This document shows, piece after piece, positions 12,732-26,475 of a stretch of DNA of 64,000 nucleotides (the stretch's first letter is position 1; each line of letters opens with the position of its first letter). The stretch spans positions 49,337-113,336 of the forward strand of contig CDMY01000339.1 of assembly GCA_001179505.1 (NCBI GenBank). Reading direction: 5' to 3'. The notes below the pieces were generated by a model, which was not told where the DNA came from, searched no databases, and was given only the letters and a program-made list of their open reading frames with translations. This stretch comes from Vitrella brassicaformis CCMP3155 (Eukaryota > Protista > Chromerida). A program made the translations under genes and the position numbers.

Positions 12732-15573
12732 GAGTCCAAGTGCCGAGGTGGTCCTGAGTCGTGTGCTTCCCGTCACACGCCCCATACGCCAAATCCGCAG
12801 CCAGCCCTGCCCCCTAGGCTGGGTCGTCCCCCCTCCCCGCCCCCTCTCCCTCCCGACGCACCTGCGAACGGCCCTACCACGAGGGCATGGAGCGCAGACG
12901 ACCCACTCCGTATGCTCGAGGCGGCGTATGGGGACTCGTTCGTGACGGACATATCGGAGAGGCCAGCCCTCGGCACATGGGAGGAGCGCCACTATCGCCT
13001 CGCCACCCGCGGGCTCACCCCACATAGGTTCCTCGTGCCCGGCGGGTCGCAGGGCGAGGGGGTGGTCAAGCTCATCACGCGAGAACTGAACGGCTTCAAC
13101 GACCACGGCAGGTCCATGTCGCCCTTCATGTGAACAACGGCCCTCGTTCTCTTGCGCGACCCCGACATGGACACGCAGGAGGCCACGAAGGGCTGCATCA
13201 AGCGCCGGGCGGCCCTGTGGAGGGATGATGAGTTTGAGGTCCTGGTGGCCGAGGTGGAGGACGTGCAGACCCGCTTGGAGGAGTCGGCGGAGAAGGCCAA
13301 GCGACGCGGGGCAGCCAAGAGGGCGGCGTCTTCCCCAGCCCGCTTCAGATCTGCTCGCGCCGGGCGGATCAGGGCTATCGATCGTTTCAAGACCATGATT
13401 GGGCAGGGCAGGACGACCGCAGCCGTCAAGCACATCACCAACCGTGCCGGAGGGGGCCCGATGCAGCCAGGCGACCCGGCCGACCCAGTCAACGCACCCG
13501 GCAGGACCGTCCTCGACGTGCTGCGCGGGAAGCACCCACCCAGGCACCCGCCCGCCCCCGGTCCCTTCACAGAGCCCCCCGAGGAGCTGCCGAAGTGCCG
13601 GCCAGCCGTCGTCACCGAGGCGCACATCGAGAGGGCCGCCCGCCAGATCCGTGGGGGGGCCGGACCGGTGGCGGGAGACGCCAGAGTGTGGGAGGCTCTG
13701 CTGCTCAAGTACGACGCGAGCAAGCAGCTGAGGGAGGCCTTCGCGAGGGCGACGAACAAGATCAACAGTGAGAACGTCGACTGGAGGACCATCGCGGCGC
13801 TGAGGGATGCTCGCCTCATCGCGCTCGACAAGCAGCCCGGCGTACGGCCCATCGGCATAGGGGAGGTGCCCTTCCGCATCATGACCAAGGCGATCTGCAT
13901 CGCGGCGCGGAGAGAGGTGGAACAGGCGTGTGGGACACTGCAGCTGTGCGCGGGCCAACAGGGCGGGATAGAGGCCGCCTGCCACGTGGTATCATCGCTC
14001 ATGACAGGGGAGCCCCTCGAGCCCATCCACCCACCCCCATCCGAAGCGCCAGCCGACAATGCCGCTAGCTCCCCTGCCCCTCCCCCGCCCCCACTGCCAC
14101 CCATCTGTGTGAAGGCGATGCTGGCGTTGGACGGGACGAACGCCTGGAACACCACCGCCCGTCCGAACGCGCTGTGGCAGGTCCGCCGGTGGTGGCCATC
14201 TGCCTCCCGCTTCATATGGAACGTCTACAAGTTCCCCGCCCGCCTCCACGTGGGCCGCGGCACGCCACACCTGTACAGCAGGGAGGGGGTGACCCAGGGG
14301 GACCCCGCCGCCTCGCTCATCTTCGCCTGCGCCTCACTCCCGATGTTCGAGGAGTTGCAGCGCCACCACCCTCGTGTCATCCAGGTCAACTTCGCTGATG
14401 ACGGGTCTGGGCTGGGGGACTTGCCTGACTTGCGGGGCTACCTTGACGATGCGATTGAGCTGGGGAAGGAGATTCGGTACCTGATCAACACGAAGAAGTG
14501 CGTCCTAGTGGTGCAGCCGGGCGATGAGGAGGAGGCCGCTTGTCTTTTCGAGGGGACGGAGGTGCGGATCGTGACGGACGCGGAGCATCTGGGGGCCATG
14601 GTGGGCACGCCCGAGGCGGGGAGGGCGTATGTGCAGCAGAAGGTCGCCGAGTTCGTTGCTGACGTCCGGGCGCTCAGCGAAGCCGCGTCGCGCGTCCCCC
14701 AGGAGGCCCTGTACGCGGCGGCCAAGTCCCTGCAGGCCAAGTGGATCTACCTGCGGCGGGTCATGCACACCACCTGTGAGGACTTCGAGGTCCTCCGCGA
14801 CACCATCACCGACACGTTCCTGCCCGCACTCGTCGGCACCCCACAGCCCCTCTCTGACGACATGAAGCGGCTGCTCCTTCGCCCTGTGCGCCACGGCGGC
14901 ATCGGCCTTGTCGACCCGTCCTTCCGTGCTCCCCTTTCGGCCCCACTTGACGGGCAGACCGACCTCTGTCAGCTCACGCGCAAGGCCTCCCGGGCGGGCA
15001 CCACCATCCTCGCCCACGCCATCGCCACCTCCGCCCCTCGTCTCCCCGCCGCAACGCATCGCAGCCAGATGCACAGGGCCAGGAGAGTCTTCCGAGAGTC
15101 CCTCGATGAGACCTTCGCCCACGACTCGACAGCCATCATCGGCCGCCTCCCTCTCGGCCAGGCCAGGGCCGCAGAGCGTACTCGCTGCAACGACACGGGG
15201 CAGTTCATGACTGTCCGCCCGTCCCAGCTGGACGACACCGACCTCAGTGCACTCGAGTTTCGTGACGCCATGTGCCACCGGTACGGCCTGCCCCACCAGG
15301 ACATGCCAGACAAGTGCGACGGCGAGCGCCCGAATGGGGCGAGGTGCGGTGCCGACTTCACCGTCCAACACGCGCTTGGCTGCTCCCTGGGCGGGCTGGT
15401 GTACGCCAAACACGACCGGCTCAAGCACGAGGTCGGCGGCCTGTGTCAGCTGGGAGGACTCAAGGTGGCGTACGAGCACACGGTGTGGAAGGAGACCGCC
15501 CACGCCGCCGCCGCCCGCGACCCCCGTGCCGTTCCCTTGGGTGTGACCCCCTGCGACGGTGCCGGCCACCCCC

Positions 15574-15873
15574 NNNNNNNNNNNNNNNNNNNNNNNNNNN
15601 NNNNNNNNNNNNNNNNNNNNNNNNNNNNNNNNNNNNNNNNNNNNNNNNNNNNNNNNNNNNNNNNNNNNNNNNNNNNNNNNNNNNNNNNNNNNNNNNNNNN
15701 NNNNNNNNNNNNNNNNNNNNNNNNNNNNNNNNNNNNNNNNNNNNNNNNNNNNNNNNNNNNNNNNNNNNNNNNNNNNNNNNNNNNNNNNNNNNNNNNNNNN
15801 NNNNNNNNNNNNNNNNNNNNNNNNNNNNNNNNNNNNNNNNNNNNNNNNNNNNNNNNNNNNNNNNNNNNNNNNN
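15574..15873. other. Assembly gap of 300 N (others: 53411-53710, 56510-56809, 58590-58889)
   Basis: Runs of N of identical length, so the true gap sizes are unknown. Confidence 1.
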
Positions 15874-16589
15874 GACGTGTGACGGCGTCTATGGGAGGGA
15901 GGCCGATCGCTTCATTCGCCGCTTGGCGGAGCTCATCAACAAGAGGGGCGCATGGGACAGATATGGTGTTGGCCGGGTCGAGCAATGGATTCGGGCGCGG
16001 CTGTCAGTGTGCCTGGCTCGTTCGGTGTCTGCGTGTCTGCGTCGGCCCAGGAGGAAGGGCCGGTGGCATTGGTTGTATCAGAGGGGGCGTTGGGGTGATG
16101 GGGCAGGGATGTTCGTGCCTGGGGAGCCTCTCATTTTCTGAGGGTGCCCCCCCTGTGAGTAGGCGTGTGGGGATAGTGTGTGTTGATTGGCCTGGCTGCC
16201 TGTCAGTCTGGTTGGTAGTCTGTCTATCTGTCTGTCAGTCCGCATGTCTGTCCACTGCATTCGCGTGTGCTGCTCATGAGCATTGTTTGTCCATTTGAGT
16301 GTCTGTAGCTCGTTATCATTGCATTGCGATCGACTGTTCATGTTTGTCCGTGCCGTGGACCAACGCGTGTGTGGCCCCCGGCGCATCGTTACACATCAAT
16401 CAATCTCTTGTGAAACCGCTGGAGGTGAGACTTCGACACGTACTTCCGCAACAGGAACGGACACCAGCGAGGTCTTCTGAGCGTTGGCACTGCGGCACAG
16501 GGCAGATCTGGAGAACGTCACCACCGGAGCGCTAGCATTCTAACGGTCCGCCGCGACCGAGTGTTGGAGCCGTCAATTGGCCGTCAACG

Positions 16590-18222: not shown

Positions 18223-19400
18223 CTACTGCCCGTCCACCACATGCAGCACCTCCAGATCATCAGCCATGAACTCTACCGACACGCCCAGACAAGCATGGCC
18301 AGAGCCCGCAAGCACATTGGGGCCGGGGTGGTTCTGACGGCAGCTGCGCATGTCGGCAGTCAGCTCTTCACTGCTATGGCCCAGCCACATATACCCACCG
18401 ATCCGCACCTTCGTACCATACACTTCCTGCCTCCCCGCCACATACACATGTTGCTTCTCTCGGTCGATGTCGATCTTGGTGGGCTGGGGGAAAAGGCCGG
18501 CCAGCGAGAAATGCCACAGATCACAGTCGTAGGCGTTCCAGTCGGTGGGGTCGTCGGGCAGCTTCAAACCGCCACTGACGAAGGCGCCGAAGACGTACTC
18601 GTCCTTGCGGATGACAAACACCAATCGCGTCTTGTCGCCGACACACCGCAGCATATCGCCGTAGGTGGTTCCGTCACGCGATGCCCTGATGCAGACACAG
18701 TCATACACAGTGTTATCTGAGTGTGTGTGTCGGCTGCATGCGTACCGGTAGAGTGACCGCAGCTTCATGGTGTGGTCGCCCAGCAGTCCGACAAGGCCGT
18801 AGTACTCCTGATGTGTCAGCGAGGTGCCCTCAGGCAGACTCACCTGCCCAGCCACACACATATGAGCATGGCAGCAGAATGCATCTTTGCTGTTGGATCG
18901 TCCGTACCAATCGCATGCGCATCGCCAGCAATGAGAGAACGGCCTGACGGGCTAAGTGGTTTGGCCGAACGTCAGCCTCCTCAGTCTCGTCCCTGACCGA
19001 TTGGAAACATGAGGCCATTCACACCCATGTGTGTCCCCTCCATGTGTCTGAGTGTACCTGCATTCGGGGCACTTGGCTGCACGACGGCCATAGGGGTGAT
19101 GGCGCACGAGGTTCCTGACACACTGCAACACAGCACAACAGACAGTGCAGCAAAGAGCCGTGCAGCCTCGGTCTGTGTGAGCCACACACCTTGGCACAGA
19201 ATGAGTGACCTGAGAGAGATACCACAGCAGGTGCGGACACAAACCACACAGGCGGTACATAGTGTGTTATCACGTCCTCACCGCATCTGAGCACTTCCGG
19301 TGCCTTGTCGCCGTCTGGTTGGTATTCCTCCTGACACACGCCACACTCAAGCGTACCAGCAGCAGCAGCAGATGAGGCGCCATGTCCATGCGTCAACCTG
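18223..19400 (-). CDS. RING (C3HC4) + TLDc domain protein
   Basis: Spliced CGVC...LRCGHSFCAKC...KCPECR, then KLRSLYRASRDG...LVFVIRKDEYVFGAF...FMADDLEVL. Frame is continuous across 5 GT-AG introns; the start codon is uncertain. Confidence 0.85.
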
Positions 19401-19967: not shown

Positions 19968-21417
19968 ATGGCGGCCTCCTCATCTGCCGCTGCTGCTGCT
20001 GGTGCTACTGGCAGCTCATCGTCGGCCAAGGGCGACGCAAAGCAGCCATGCGGTCGGTGAGCCACCACATCCATCCATCCATCCATGAGCAAGGCATATT
20101 TCATGTGATGTGTCCTGTTTGTGTATGCCGTGGTGCTTATCTATGGGTGTGCAGGTCATAAGTTCCATGGGCAGGTACGCATCTCTCACTGTACCGACAA
20201 GAGACCATCGCAGCAGCATATGTCTTATGTGTGTGTGCACCTCTCTGCTGGCTGCAGTGTCTGCTGGGCATGGTTCGCCCGCGCCCCTTTGGCTTCACTG
20301 CTGGGCCGTCTGCTGGCCTGCCGAAGTGCAGCGGGCGATGTGGGAGGGGTGGCAGTGGCAGCGATGACAGTGCGGCTGGCGGCCAACAGGGTGGGCCTCA
20401 GATGCTGACAGTCCACGGTGAGCAGCAGTCGACACAGATACAGAGAGGTGCAATGGGTGTCTGCCTTGTGTGTGTCATGCAGGCCATTCTGTGTGTTTGG
20501 AGGTGAGTATCCACAGAAGGTCATGAATGGCCCCACTCACTCAGTCCTCCTGTCTGCCATTCCTTCCTTTGTCCGTCAGTGTGCTGTGCAGTGGCAAGAC
20601 TACGGCCGTCATAACAGTGTCAGCCAGCCAATCTGCCCCGTATGCCGGTAGGTGCACATCTGACAACACACATGGACAGATGATGCACAGCACATTAGCG
20701 TGGCCATCCCTCCCTCTCTGTGTGTCTTGGTTTGTGGTGCGGTGTTTGTCAGGGCCGGCTTTGCGTGGGCGAGGGGCGGCAGCTCCATCGGCCTCTCGTA
20801 CGTGGCGCACATCGCCAAGTGGCTGCAGCGCGAGAAGAAGCTCACACTCATCTACAAGTACACACACAGACACTCACACACACGCACAGTCATGTGATGT
20901 GTCCTTGATGTGTCTGTCCATCAGGGCATTGCGTGACGGCGCCAAGTATGATGATTTGCTGCGGTGTGTGGGCGATAAGAGGCGATTGGTCTTCGTCATC
21001 CGCAAGGACGAGTACGTCTTGGGCGCCTTCATCAGTGAAGGCCTTCAGCTGCCCGACGACCGCACCGACAGCCACTACTATGGGTGTGACGTGTGGTATT
21101 TCTCGCTGGGCGGCCACTTCGCCCAGCCGACCAAGATAGACATCCCACGAATGTGTCAGTTTGTGTATCTGGCGGGGAGGGATGGGAGTGTGGGTGGTGG
21201 TGCGAGGGTGGAGCTCGGTGAGTGTCTGTATTTGGGTGACGGCCATGGCAGTCGCCGGCCCGCTGCCGACATCCGCAGCTGTTATCAGTACGCCCACAGG
21301 GACGATGTGCCCGCGGGCTATGTGGTCGCTAGAAATAGATATGGCCATGCCCTGCTGGGCGGGTCGGAGTGTTTCCATGCGGATGAGATTGAGATACTGA
21401 CTGTGGTGGCACAGTGA
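19968..21417 (+). CDS. Partial RING-H2-like + TLDc domain protein, possibly degenerate
   Basis: MAASSSAAAA...QPC|GHKFHGQ|C...ICPVCR, then KLTLIYK|ALRDG...YVLGAF...FHADEIEIL. The first CxxC pair of the RING is not found, and the middle exons are uncertain. Confidence 0.75.
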
Positions 21418-21502
21418 GTCAGTGAGGGGGGAGAGAGGGACGGGATGCATTTCTCCTGGCTTTATCTATCTACCCATCGGTGAGCGTCTGGCGGCCTCTG
21501 AT

Positions 21503-21841
21503 GTCGTGTCCGACTGTGACGTGTGGTATTTCTCGCTGGGCGGCCGCTTTGCCCAGCCGACCAAGATAGACATCCCACGAGGATATCAGTGTGTGTACGT
21601 GGCGGGGAGGGATGGGAGTGTGGGTGGTGCCGCGAATGTGCTGATCGGTGGGTATCTGTGGTTGGGCCACGGCAGCGACGAGCCGGCTGCCGACATCCGC
21701 AGCTGTGCAGAGTTTTCCGATAGCGGCAGTGTGCCTGCGGGCGATGTGGGGGAGAGGGATGGCTACGGCAATGCACTGCTGGGCGGGTCGCTGTATTTCC
21801 ATGCTGACGAGATGGAGGTGCTGCATGTGGGCGGCCGCTGA
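21503..21841 (+). pseudogene. Tandem partial duplicate of the C-terminal half of a TLDc domain
   Basis: CDVWYFSLGGRFAQPTKIDIPR...FHADEMEVL, highly similar to 21085-21417; the N-terminal half is missing. Confidence 0.85.
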
Positions 21842-22118
21842 GTGAGAGACGGGGGGAGGGGATACCGTGTCTCGCCGCCCAATGAACGGCTGTGGGTGTG
21901 AGGCGGATGGGATGGTGTACAGCGATTTCCCTTGTGTGTGTGTGTGCATATGATCCTATCCCATATATCGGTTTGGGGGAGAGACACTTACGTCAATCAA
22001 TGAGTCAAGTGTCCTTACACTCATGGCATGCATTGTTCCTTCCCGACCGGAGTTACTGCACACACGTCCTCAATCTACTCTACAATGCACTAAACTACAT
22101 ACACTGCTGCCACACGGT

Positions 22119-25100
22119 CTACACATTGAAGTTCTGCAGCCCGTCACGAATCACCAATGCACCAGCCTGACAGACACGCACACACACACAATCCCACAGA
22201 AGTGTGTCCTCGTTTGTACCTTTGCGTAGGTTTCGAGCAGCATCTTGCTCGACGTGTGGCGCATCACGGCCTGCAACACACACACAGCACATCCACACAG
22301 ATAGATATGGACTTGTCCATCCACCCGCACCCGCTCAAACTCACCTGAGCGACGGCGAGGGGCACCGGGGGATTGAACGTGGCGGACAGAGTAGCGAACG
22401 AATGCCTGCAATACAACAAAGAGACAGACAGATGAACATACTCATCAACACACGTGAGTGTGTGTGTGTGTGGCGGCTTGCCTGAGGATGTATGGGAAGA
22501 CTCTGCGAGTGCGGCCGTCCTCGGTCACATCAACACCAGCCCTGCACACACACACACATGTCAAGCAACCAGCCACAACGAAGGAGAGAGAGAGAGATGG
22601 GGACATACGACCACGCTCACACACACACAAATTACCTGCGGGCCGTGTTTTCTAGAGCGAGCTTGAAGCACCCTGCCAGCCACACACACATTCACACGTG
22701 TTTCTGGATTGGCTGCGCTCCCTGCCGGCCCGCCTCGCCGCCAATTTTTTACGAACGTATTTCTTTTTGCAGCGGTTGCGTCTTCATTTGGTCCTCGAAC
22801 ACGCGCTGGTAGAAACACCGACCTGCGCGGGCACACCCTTACTCATTCAGTGGTCCATCCATCCATCCATCGGTGTGTGTGCGTGTGGGTATGGGTATGG
22901 GTACCTGTGCGCGGCCTTTTCTCCAGCTCCCACCTACACACACATATGGCTGATGGATTGATGGTGTTGTCCCATGTGTGTCGGGTGTCCGTATGTGTGT
23001 TTGGCGGGGGGGGGGGGGCCTACCATTGTTTCATTTCTCTGAGTGCGATGGGCGTGAGGGGGATGGTGGCACCTGATGTGGACGTCTTGCTCCCTGACGC
23101 ATGCACGCACACACACACACACAAACACATCTGGTGTGATTCATTAGCGTGGTTTGGGTGTGTGTGTGTGTGAGTACCTCTGACTCGCAGAGTGGCCCTG
23201 TCCATATCGACATCCTCCCACCGAACCTGCACCAACTCGGAGGGTCTCAAGCCAAGACCTGCTCACACAACAAAGCCACGCGTGTGTGTGTGTGTGTGTG
23301 TGCAGACAGATACACGAACACACCCACCTGCGCCGAGCCCGAACAGGGCTCTATACATGGGAGACGAACATGCGTCGAGCAATCGACGCACCTGCACGCA
23401 GCGATGGGGATGGAACACACACTCGCAGACAGACAGACGGACACGTGCGCATGGCGTACCTCGTCAGCGGTGAAAGGGATGATCGGCCGGGTGCGTCGGG
23501 TTGACCCCTGCAGCACGTGCACACATCAACAGATGTGCAGAGGGTCAACAGTGGATGCATGTCTGTGTATGGTGTGACCTTGATGACTCTGAAGGGGGGC
23601 ATCTTGGCGACGCGGCCCGAATACACACCATACTTCAATGCGGCCTGAATCACAGACACATCGCACACACCCAGGGATATTCTGACACGCCAATGGCACC
23701 CACCCACCCACACACGCACTTGGTATGCTGCCTGGTGCAGTGAAAGAGTCCGCGCGCTGCAGCCTCTCTCCTTGAGCAACCTGATATATCAACGGATCCA
23801 CGCTTGACGCCATGGTCTCACGGTGTCTCTGTGTGTGTGGGCGATGGGTGGTATCTGTTTACCTACCTTAGGTAGTCTTCCCAGTGTTTCGGGGTGAGAT
23901 CAGTCAGCGGCACACTGCCCAAATGCTGCTCACACGCACATCATCACATACACAGAGGGAGGAGGGCCATGCCATCCGTCCGTATGTGTGTGTGTGGGGA
24001 CACTCACCTTGAGTATGTGTGTCCAGAATCCCTTTTCGACGCGAATGGTGTGCGCGCCGACCTCCTCTGCCCTACAGGTGGGTGGGTGGATCCACACACG
24101 CACACACGTGTGCTGTGGAGTGGAGTATGGGTGAATGCACTGACTGACTCACCTGACGGGCAGGAAAGTCTTGGTCACGAAATCTTTCAACGTTTCCTGA
24201 CGGACGAATCGATTATCGTGTTGACAGACAGACACATGCATCGATGGATGCACACACCGGTCGTTCGTCGATCTTGAAGCCGCACTCAGGGCAGAAGCGG
24301 GCCTTCTTGGGCAAAGACGCCCCACACGACGGACAAAAACCTGCGACACACACATGACTGCGCCCTTAGAAGAGAAAAGGTGTGTTCGTGTCCCGGATAC
24401 CTTTGTTGGTCTTGGCAGCTCCGGCGTCTTCTTCTTGTGGGTACAGAGGGGCAGCCGCCTGAAGCAGAAACAGAGGCATATGAATGTCTTTTCGTCTTCC
24501 TCCCTCCCTCCCTCCCTCCCTCCCTCTGTGTGTTTACTGACGAGGTGTTCTGCCCTCTGGCGCGCCATTTCTGTCTGCCGGATGGCCGTGTCAGGCCGCC
24601 TCGGATGACGATGCTGCTGATGGATACACACATGGACACCAAAACACACGTGAGGGCCTCTCGTGTGCGCGTGCACTCACCCCGTCTGTGTCGGTGTGGT
24701 CGGTGAGAATGGTGTGGATGATGTCGGCCTTCCTCATGTGCTTCGACACATAGCGATCCATCTACACTTACAAGAAAACACACAAGTGGGTCTGTCTGCA
24801 TATTCACGCAGGAACGCCCATTTCTTTACCTCTCTGCAGATGCTTTTGAGTTCCACCACAGTCAGCTTCTCGAGCGACGCCCTTGTGTGCCGATGGTGTG
24901 CGCCGCTGTGGTGATCCGCACCCACTGCAGATGCACCCGCCGCGCTGCACACGCGTAGACCACACACAAGAAACACATTCAGATGGTCACAGGATTGGTC
25001 TGCTCGAGGGGGAGGGAGGGAGCGCACCTGTCATCGCTTTCTGGGTCTCCTTGGTGCTGTGTGTGTCGGTCGCCATTGGCCGTCCTGTCGTTGTAGAGCA

Positions 25101-25574
25101 CCAGGCGGTCAATCAGCTCGTCCTTGCGGCCTTTAGCCGACACACACAATGTCCGGCTGTCATTGCAGACACACACACATACACACATACACACATACAC
25201 GTGGCTGTGTGCATCCTCCATCCATCCATCCATCAATGCGTACCAGATATCTCTCAGCTGAGTGACCTTCATGCCCTCGAGCGACGGTCGGTCGAATGGC
25301 CCATACCTGTAAGCACACACACAACACACGTCTGTGTCTGACCCCACTGCCTGCCGTAGAGCTCACTGGTCACTCATTGTAGTTGTTATGGGCGGCATGG
25401 AGGGTATTGGCAGCGGGGTGGGGTGGTCCATGACATCTGCACGCAACGCAACACAACACATCACAACGAAACTCACAGACACATGACTGTTGTGTTGTGT
25501 CTGCTTACGTACCTTTGCTGCCGCTCGTTCCTCTTTTCCCAAATGACACAGACGGGCGCTGTTTGCCACACACA

Positions 25575-25606
<32 letters not shown>

Positions 25607-25740
25607 CCACACACACACTCACGCAGCGCGCCCAAGCGTACCTTCACAGCAGTTGCGGCATATGCGTGCAGGTGTGTCGTGGCAGCCCTCTCATCATGCG
25701 ACAGGGACGACGGCAGCAGGAACACTGTCGGCAAACGCAT
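22119..25740 (-). CDS. Intron-rich tyrosine recombinase (phage-integrase/Xer fold) with two SAP-like domains and a double zinc ribbon
   Basis: Spliced protein: SLEGMKVTQLRDICRTLCVSAKGRKDELIDRL; SLEKLTVVELKSICREMDRYVSKHMRKADII; FCPSCGASLPKKARFCPECG; HLGSVPLTDLTPKHWEDYL; FTADEVRRLLDAC; GLGLRPSELVQVRWEDVD; GSKT; PYILRHSFAT; VMRHTSSKMLLETYAK; stop at 22119. The first 1-2 exons and one exon near 22700-22820 are uncertain. Confidence 0.9.
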
Positions 25741-25752
25741 CACCGCACGGCT

Positions 25753-26475
25753 CTCACACAAGATCTCTCAACAGCTCGGCGCTGCTGGGTGTTTGTGTCA
25801 TGGCCCTCGGAGGCGAGCGCAGGTCAACAGAGCAAACTCGTCATCGGCCTCACAGCCGTGGTGGATGGCTGCAAACAGACGGGCAGACAGAGGAGGACAG
25901 AGGAATGACTTGCAACCCAGTGTCCTGTTGAGGTTTCAATCGGCTCTCTCTTCCCACCTGTGGGCAGCCTGGCCGCCCTCTGATGAGTTCGGGCTCCAAA
26001 CTCACCCAGATCTGTCCGCAATGGTGCGAGCTCGAGTGAAAAGAGTTTCCTCTTTCTTTTCCTTCTTTCTTTCGCTGGATGGTCCTCTGGACTCCCACTG
26101 GCCAATCTCGTGCACTGAACAAGGGAAAGAAATGTGTCAGCTGTGAGAAAGAGGGCAATTCGATCCTCACTCGATCACCGACTTCGACAAATTCGTTTTG
26201 CTGTTTTATCACATCAATCGCTCCGCAGGGAGACCATTCACAGGACGAGTGAAAGAAACAGCCGAAAGGAGCGCAGCAAAGGCTGGGGGTTTGGCGGGGG
26301 CCTAAAATGCGAGCTCACATTCTTCGCCGGGGATGCAGTGAGGGCAGATGGGCTCTCACCCACAGTCTTAGAGGGCTTCAGATCTGCTTCGCGTTGCTGC
26401 AGCTGACAAAGATCTCTCGTGGCCTCGTTGTGTGACCGACGCAATGTTCCTCCTCGTGGTGAGCCAACAGCCGCT
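25753..26475 (+). repeat. ~700-bp direct repeat (second copy 33163-33830) containing the 5' exons of an unknown gene
   Basis: Both copies begin CTCACACAAGATCTCTCAA, then ATGGCCCTCGGAG(G/A)CGAGCGCAG|GT, with HLWAAWPP.DEF.LQTHPDL and QFDPHSITDF.KFVLLFYH. Confidence 0.85.

Follow-up and report, generated by a model that had tools for sequence, protein, structure and literature searches.

We describe an intron-rich tyrosine recombinase gene of the chromerid Vitrella brassicaformis CCMP3155, located on the minus strand of a 64,000-nucleotide stretch (hereafter, the window) of contig CDMY01000339.1 from assembly GCA_001179505.1. As judged from sequence comparison, it is the single-copy chromerid ortholog of the apicomplexan INT tyrosine recombinase, known as Pf-Int in Plasmodium falciparum and as Tg-Int in Toxoplasma. 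According to the interpretation that we favour, to which we assign a probability of roughly 0.72, this INT ortholog is a plastid-imported protein of bacterial-integrase descent that acts in site-specific recombination or resolution of plastid DNA. The INT family as well as its Vitrella member have already been reported; the protein is present in GenBank and UniProt, and the Vitrella homolog of Pf-Int was listed in a 2021 preprint by Berglar et al. (bioRxiv 10.1101/2021.10.12.464051). The novelty implied by an earlier reading of the window, made from the nucleotide sequence alone (hereafter, the original prediction), therefore has to be given up. What is added here is a transcript-verified model of 26 exons, a NAGNAG isoform, a GC-AG intron in a catalytic Arg codon, nine introns in common with Toxoplasma as proof of ancient nuclear residence, and hints of a bacterial-integrase origin of INT and of its occurrence in diatoms and bolidophytes.

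Homology searches revealed orthologs of the Vitrella protein in Eimeria spp., Cyclospora, Toxoplasma, Hammondia, Neospora, Besnoitia, Cardiosporidium, Digyalum and all Plasmodium species. Word-index searches starting from the Vitrella protein (P0002) or from alignment A1 missed Plasmodium and Toxoplasma, which were reached only from the conserved region of the Cardiosporidium ortholog. The Plasmodium orthologs are labelled "tyrosine recombinase (INT)", and the Toxoplasma ortholog (P0106, 1022 residues) is labelled "site-specific recombinase, phage integrase family protein". Pf-Int of P. falciparum 3D7 (P0133, PF3D7_1308800) was found to be 46% identical to the Vitrella protein over 318 residues (E 1e-113). 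Tg-Int of Toxoplasma ME49 (P0106) matched it with E ~1e-118, and the orthologs from Toxoplasma, Hammondia and Besnoitia scored 380–390 bits.

In a maximum-likelihood tree of 57 rows and 361 columns, calculated under LG+C20 with Shimodaira–Hasegawa-like approximate likelihood ratio test (SH-aLRT) support and including no Crypton or DIRS sequences, the Vitrella protein was placed within a eukaryotic INT clade (99% SH-aLRT) that holds all apicomplexan INT proteins. Mapping of the Toxoplasma locus L004 onto its protein revealed nine of the ten Tg-Int introns to coincide with Vitrella introns in exact position and phase. In addition, the H-to-Y substitution of the catalytic set (Y435 in Pf-Int) is present in Vitrella as Y520, with the rest of the R-K-x-R-H-Y signature being kept; this change is conserved across Apicomplexa and yields the R-K-Y-R-H-Y set of Pf-Int (Ghorbal et al. 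2012, PMC3466309). The sequence similarity to Pf-Int and Tg-Int, the 99% clade and the shared introns settle the orthology. Furthermore, the introns common to Vitrella and Toxoplasma imply that the gene was already intron-bearing and nuclear in the ancestor that chromerids share with apicomplexans.

Comparison of the individual proteins revealed conserved cores and divergent N-termini. Like the Vitrella protein, Pf-Int (PF3D7_1308800, MAL13P1.42) combines the R-K-Y-R-H-Y set including the H-to-Y change with a four-cysteine (C4) ribbon immediately before the core-binding domain and with a C-terminal tail. Plasmodium N-termini are short and AT-biased. Vitrella has a clear SAP domain, a second SAP-like motif, a weaker signal-peptide-like start and 25 introns. 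Tg-Int (TGME49_259230, formerly 059230) shares the architecture of SAP plus integrase with the Vitrella protein; at 1022 residues, however, it is longer than the 575-residue Vitrella protein and has a first exon of 690 residues, an extended N-terminus of low complexity and a strong signal anchor.

The splice model of the Vitrella gene was rebuilt by hand from positions 21800–26100 of the window and checked by script. The coding sequence extends on the minus strand from the ATG at 25740 to the TAG at 22119 and consists of 26 exons, which conforms with the roughly 25 short exons in one frame of the original prediction; its 1728 nt encode a product of 575 residues free of internal stops. The 25 introns are 53–94 nt in length each and rich in GT/CA and GGAT microsatellites. 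Twenty-four of them are of the GT-AG type. Intron 23 (22406–22481, minus strand), with the donor GCAAGC after 22482, is the sole GC-AG intron of the gene and splits the codon of the catalytic Arg523; an intron of identical position and phase is present in the Toxoplasma gene. A stop in the exon at 22700–22820, which had been feared to be unavoidable, is bypassed by a GTTCGT donor after 22757, upon which the exon 22672–22636 reads CFKLALENTAR in frame.

The spliced model agrees residue for residue with protein P0002 (575 residues), which originates from the independent MMETSP Transcript_8755. P0002 was found by querying a representative library of 1.8 billion proteins with an 80-residue stop-free stretch covering exons 18 and 19 through the in-frame intron 18. 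The His/Thr-rich translation of intron 18 also drew the low-complexity matches P0001, P0004, P0005, P0009 and P0037, which were discarded. The 90% cluster of P0002 includes CEM03382.1 (UniProt A0A0G4EWM8), a "SAP domain-containing protein" of 574 residues from V. brassicaformis CCMP3155. The sole difference between this protein (P0127, MMETSP Transcript_8756) and P0002 is the lack of Q202 in the former, as explained by a NAGNAG tandem acceptor, CAG-CAG, of intron 7 (24614–24619, minus strand), from which isoforms of 575 residues with Q202 and of 574 residues without it result. Both isoforms are represented in MMETSP, and the GenBank model is the shorter one. A further member of the 90% cluster, P0128 (582 residues, JGI/IMG), diverges after K560, as expected for retention of the last intron (22167–22219); this form would lose the C-terminal helix and retain Tyr558.

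Evidence for splicing was obtained from Logan contigs of two runs labelled "RNA?" (X1 and X2), which fall on the locus as exon pieces only. According to these contigs, the transcribed span covers 22014–25823 on the minus strand, with the 5' untranslated region (5'UTR) at 25823–25741, the coding sequence at 25740–22119 and the 3'UTR extending to ~22014. X1 record 1 (1202 nt) covers exons 8–26 and the 3'UTR, with gaps of 374, 407 and 59 nt that equal the summed lengths of the intervening exons; X1 record 2 (688 nt) covers the 5'UTR from 25823 and exons 1–7, with a 179-nt gap equal to exons 2, 3 and 4 together. Exons 18–21 are supported by X2 record 4. Contigs from the DNA runs X3 and X5 are collinear with the genome and keep the introns. 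The RNA check proposed with the original prediction thus returned a spliced transcript, with contigs of two runs matching the exon lengths. Within the transcribed 5'UTR, an upstream open reading frame (ORF) of 15 codons was observed at 25754–25801 on the minus strand (ATG 25801–25799), which is in another frame and ends 13 nt before the main ATG.

The k-mer depth within the recombinase gene was 26.7 and 26.3 in the DNA runs X3 and X5, respectively, compared to 25–32 in the flanks; since gene depth equals flank depth, the gene is single copy. A tblastn search of the window with the protein returned no second copy of the gene, and a repeat finder detected no terminal repeats around it, but only microsatellites spanning the gene. 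Together with the RNA contigs and the full catalytic set, these data uphold the view of an intact, spliced gene of host type rather than a DIRS or Crypton component.

The encoded protein is composed, in this order, of a disordered leader, a SAP domain, a weak second SAP-like motif, a C4 zinc ribbon, a core-binding domain and a Phage_integrase domain. Exon-by-exon Pfam scans yielded sub-threshold integrase and SAP matches only and were replaced by a search with the full-length protein, where the Phage_integrase, SAP and Zn_Ribbon_1 matches all exceeded the curated cut-offs. The leader (residues 1–78; 25288–25740, minus strand, as for all features of the gene) is of low complexity and disordered, with a predicted local distance difference test (pLDDT) score below 50 in AlphaFold2 and a nine-residue Kyte-Doolittle maximum of 1.61; it is a possible targeting presequence. 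In the supplements of PMC6668581, which give chromerid localisation predictions, no integrase, recombinase or SAP entry was found. The first SAP domain (residues 81–112; 25099–25281) is split by intron 4 and was detected with E 1.2e-11 at a pLDDT of ~94. For residues 160–198 (24690–24874), a second, divergent helix-extension-helix of SAP or Rho_N type is indicated by a sub-threshold Rho_N match (23.5 bits versus a cut-off of 24.9) at low pLDDT (~55), and as a SAP motif this stretch passed at E<=1 but not at E<=0.01. The C4 zinc ribbon (residues 246–268, with C248, C251, C262 and C265; 24273–24401) was matched by Zn_Ribbon_1 (residues 247–268, E 2e-7) and DZR. It is followed by the SAM-like helical core-binding domain (residues 275–372; 23505–24193), a four-helix bundle with pLDDT >90 and weak Phage_int_SAM_3, SAM_5 and Phage_int_M matches at residues 282–368. 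The catalytic domain (residues 383–575; 22122–23474) was delimited by Pfam PF00589, by alignment to XerA (4A8E) and by conservation; the PF00589 match at residues 383–560 reached 65.2 bits versus a cut-off of 27.1 (E 8e-18). Of the predicted order SAP-SAP-zinc ribbon plus recombinase, the first SAP domain, the ribbon and the catalytic domain are thus supported by Pfam (E 1e-11, 2e-7 and 8e-18), and the second SAP is weak.

Alignment to Pyrococcus XerA (4A8E) placed R413, K438, Y520-x-x-R523, H548 and Y558 on the catalytic positions, so that the catalytic set is unbroken, as had been predicted. The respective codons are R413 at 23247–23245, K438 at 23088–23086, Y520, which replaces the first His, at 22492–22490, R523 at 22483–22482 plus 22405, H548 at 22258–22256 and the nucleophile Y558 at 22228–22226; for R413, K438 and Y558 the coordinates of the original prediction were exact. 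An AlphaFold2 model built with a 72-sequence alignment showed pLDDT >90 across residues 250–575. A Foldseek comparison of this model with the PDB returned probabilities of 1.00 to Tn1549 Int, XerA, lambda Int, IntI4, XerH and Cre, with alignments of ~300–330 columns to two-domain recombinases and, for Tn1549 Int, E 6e-11 and a target template modelling (TM) score of 0.67. By the structural model, the Vitrella protein has the complete two-domain tyrosine-recombinase fold.

The archaeal XerA structures (PDB 4A8E, 5HXY) have the same fold as the Vitrella protein, and 4A8E was the best sequence match among solved structures (E 1.5e-11). Resolution of circular-chromosome multimers by Xer is also the same kind of job as is proposed here for Vitrella INT. 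However, Xer proteins are devoid of the SAP and zinc-ribbon modules, and no dif-like site is known for INT. Assignment as a Xer equivalog was rejected, with NCBIfam scores of 69 bits versus a cut-off of 220 for XerA, 49 versus 335 for XerC and 42 versus 330 for XerD.

The four ribbon cysteines were found to be invariant in 19 of 19 aligned eukaryotic INT proteins, including one Plasmodium INT, and a Pfam SAP match was detected in seven of the 19. In Pf-Int, a CxxC-N10-16-CxxC pattern is present at residues 164–181, within the "coupler" (residues 157–191) of PMC3466309. The CxxC pairs were absent from the two nearest bacterial relatives that were checked. As the words zinc and cysteine do not occur in the two Int papers, the family-wide invariant C4 zinc ribbon constitutes a small addition to them. 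An Atlas search gave hints of zinc-ribbon-plus-integrase fusions in phages, which are regarded as a lead only.

In the tree, the INT clade nests among bacterial-type integrases, with P0045, P0024 and P0035 as its sister group and an integrase from a Myxococcota metagenome-assembled genome (MAG) further out. P0045 derives from one end of a marine contig of 47 kb that looks bacterial. Integrases of the P0045/P0047 type (marine metagenome; Myxococcota MAG "site-specific integrase") are 35–47% identical to the Vitrella protein over the core-binding and catalytic domains (E 1e-39 to 1e-62) and likewise have Tyr in place of His (PYLLR) as well as the WEDV and IPLT motifs. In contrast to the Vitrella gene, they are intronless prokaryotic genes, and instead of leader, SAP and zinc ribbon they carry another N-terminal region of ~90 residues (W-R-L...KG-Y-Y...LGYL). 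The nested position points to an old bacterial acquisition, and we infer that INT goes back to a bacterial integrase that was gained prior to the chromerid/apicomplexan split. Domestication from a eukaryotic mobile element, as suggested by the original prediction, is at odds with this placement.

Indications of the site of action come from the orthologs. Tg-Int, with its SAP motif, was localised to the apicoplast lumen, and a role in apicoplast DNA recombination was proposed (Sheiner et al. 2011, PMC3228799); for Pf-Int, partial co-localisation with the apicoplast was reported (Berglar et al. 2021, bioRxiv 10.1101/2021.10.12.464051). The organellar option of the original prediction matches these reports. 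Most INT orthologs possess a strongly hydrophobic, signal-peptide-like start with Kyte-Doolittle values of 2.6–3.6. Site-specific recombination or resolution of plastid DNA is therefore proposed as the most likely role of Vitrella INT. Following import into the plastid, the protein would bind plastid DNA via its SAP and zinc-ribbon modules, which would replace the unrelated N-terminal region of the bacterial relatives, and would assemble on paired core sites. Tyr558 would then cleave via a 3'-phosphotyrosyl intermediate, with strand exchange proceeding through a Holliday junction. The expected outcome would be resolution of plastid multimers or concatemers, or recombination of inverted repeats, and would serve genome maintenance and segregation.

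Several observations weigh against this assignment. The Vitrella N-terminus (MRLPTVFLLPSSLS) is weakly hydrophobic, with a Kyte-Doolittle value of 1.61, and no Phe is found directly after a plausible cleavage site of the leader; plastid import in Vitrella is suggested by the orthologs only. Nuclear proteins are the best-known carriers of SAP motifs, and the second SAP is doubtful. To our knowledge, recombination activity or a DNA target has been shown for no INT protein. The nearest available homolog is below 60% identity, at which synonymous sites would be saturated. DNA binding by recombinant Pf-Int lacked clear specificity, and parasites of one Pf-Int knock-out line survived (PMC3466309). 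The Pf-Int constructs of 2012 did not include zinc-ribbon and SAP modules. In a subsequent transposon screen, the Pf-Int gene was scored as essential (cited in bioRxiv 10.1101/2021.10.12.464051), which means that the Plasmodium reports on essentiality of INT conflict. The Vitrella ortholog provides context for, but does not solve, the question of what INT targets and whether it recombines DNA.

Four alternatives were considered and are taken here in order of their weight. The first, which we judge to be unlikely, also assumes a plastid enzyme with tyrosine-recombinase chemistry, but one that serves purposes other than recombination between two sites, such as hairpin or telomere resolution of linear plastid DNA ends, or topoisomerase-like relaxation and decatenation. 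This chemistry is known to be common to protelomerases and type IB topoisomerases, and palindromic core sites of INT have so far not been found; hairpin resolution and topoisomerase-like roles were discussed in bioRxiv 10.1101/2021.10.12.464051. However, the Foldseek probability of 1.00 was obtained to the canonical two-domain proteins Tn1549 Int, lambda Int, IntI4 and Cre, and the full recombinase catalytic set is kept, including the beta-hairpin Lys.

A nuclear or dual-targeted, chromatin-associated recombinase acting in programmed or stochastic rearrangement of nuclear DNA, as in the original 2012 proposal for Pf-Int, ranks next and is considered improbable. SAP motifs are characteristic of scaffold-attachment proteins of the nucleus, and the Vitrella leader makes a weak signal peptide. 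Moreover, var, rif and stevor DNA was recovered in an in-vitro pull-down with Pf-Int, for which a K/R patch has been put forward as a nuclear signal; the binding in vitro, however, was not sequence-specific (all PMC3466309). Tg-Int is found in the apicoplast lumen despite its SAP motif (PMC3228799), the Pf-Int signal was seen at apicoplast-adjacent foci (bioRxiv 10.1101/2021.10.12.464051), and most orthologs have clear signal-peptide-like N-termini. The programmed nuclear rearrangement considered in the original prediction is unsupported by the present data.

Targeting to the mitochondrion is very unlikely; there, the recombinase would act on mitochondrial DNA, which in chromerids and apicomplexans is typically fragmented and recombining. 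The Vitrella leader, being Ser/Thr/Ala/Pro-rich, slightly basic and weakly hydrophobic, would suit a mitochondrial presequence, yet mitochondrial localisation is on record for no ortholog, Tg-Int resides in the apicoplast lumen, and the relatives of diatom and bolidophyte type have signal-peptide-like N-terminal segments, as is typical of import into complex plastids.

Finally, the view that the gene is a mobile-element recombinase of Crypton-like or DIRS-like type, or a recently domesticated copy of one, draws on the general experience that tyrosine recombinases of eukaryotic nuclear genomes usually belong to such elements and on a weak reverse transcriptase-like ORF 6 kb off, but is effectively refuted by the single-copy depth, the lack of another copy or of element termini in the window, the 25 introns, nine of which are common with Toxoplasma, the orthologs across Apicomplexa and the nesting of the clade in bacterial integrases. 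Vitrella INT shares with Crypton and DIRS recombinases its being encoded in a eukaryotic nuclear genome; it differs from them in being intron-rich, with introns common across phyla, and in having bacterial proteins as its closest relatives. Orthology and the shared ancestral introns exclude a Crypton, DIRS or recent-domestication origin. Specifically, a Crypton was rejected on the basis of depth in two DNA runs, the copy search in the window, missing termini, shared introns and tree position. A DIRS element was rejected given that neither reverse transcriptase/RNase H nor methyltransferase domains were found in the 3.8-kb transcript, that terminal repeats are missing and that the nearest reverse transcriptase-like ORF is weak and on the opposite strand.

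This ORF (13152–16295, plus strand) is uninterrupted over 1048 residues, gave a weak RVT_1 match (E 0.002, below cut-off) and is separated from the 3' end of the recombinase gene by ~6 kb. This ORF, which probably represents the remnant of a LINE-like retroelement, lies on the other strand, with inverted TLDc copies in between, and is unrelated to the recombinase gene. The earlier statement that no reverse transcriptase is nearby has to be amended to include this ORF.

Beyond chromerids and apicomplexans, the INT clade includes a subclade with 97% support that comprises proteins from the diatom Corethron hystrix (P0124 cluster; P0129), the bolidophyte Triparma retinervis (P0098) and small picoeukaryote-like contigs; the family had been listed as apicomplexan-specific by Sheiner et al. 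2011 (PMC3228799). The proteins of this subclade show signal-peptide-like starts and the C4 zinc ribbon. The INT-clade proteins P0013/P0097 from a picoeukaryote-like genome (locus L003, 359–2197, GCA_014466275.1) carry an insertion of ~215 residues with NUMOD1 and I-HmuI-like DNA-binding motifs, which interrupts the catalytic domain between its beta-hairpin region and the YxxR helix. The signal peptide of P0097 ends in ...LSFANPF, reminiscent of the ochrophyte ASAFAP plastid-import motif. We tentatively suggest, at less than even odds, that INT is an ancient nuclear-encoded plastid-DNA recombinase of algae with red-derived complex plastids, a plastid counterpart of Xer that arose from a single capture of a bacterial integrase, the N-terminus of which was swapped for a zinc ribbon, with or without SAP. 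If this holds true, the photosynthetic, free-living Vitrella would be a convenient system for finding the DNA target of INT.

Just downstream of the recombinase gene, a TLDc-domain ORF is present in two inverted, diverged copies (~80%), at 18226–18861 (minus strand) and 20527–21414 (plus strand). The arms of the inverted repeat were located at 18430–18699 and 20911–21180, and one TLDc copy is partly duplicated in tandem, as evident from the correspondence of 21085–21431 with 21515–21855.

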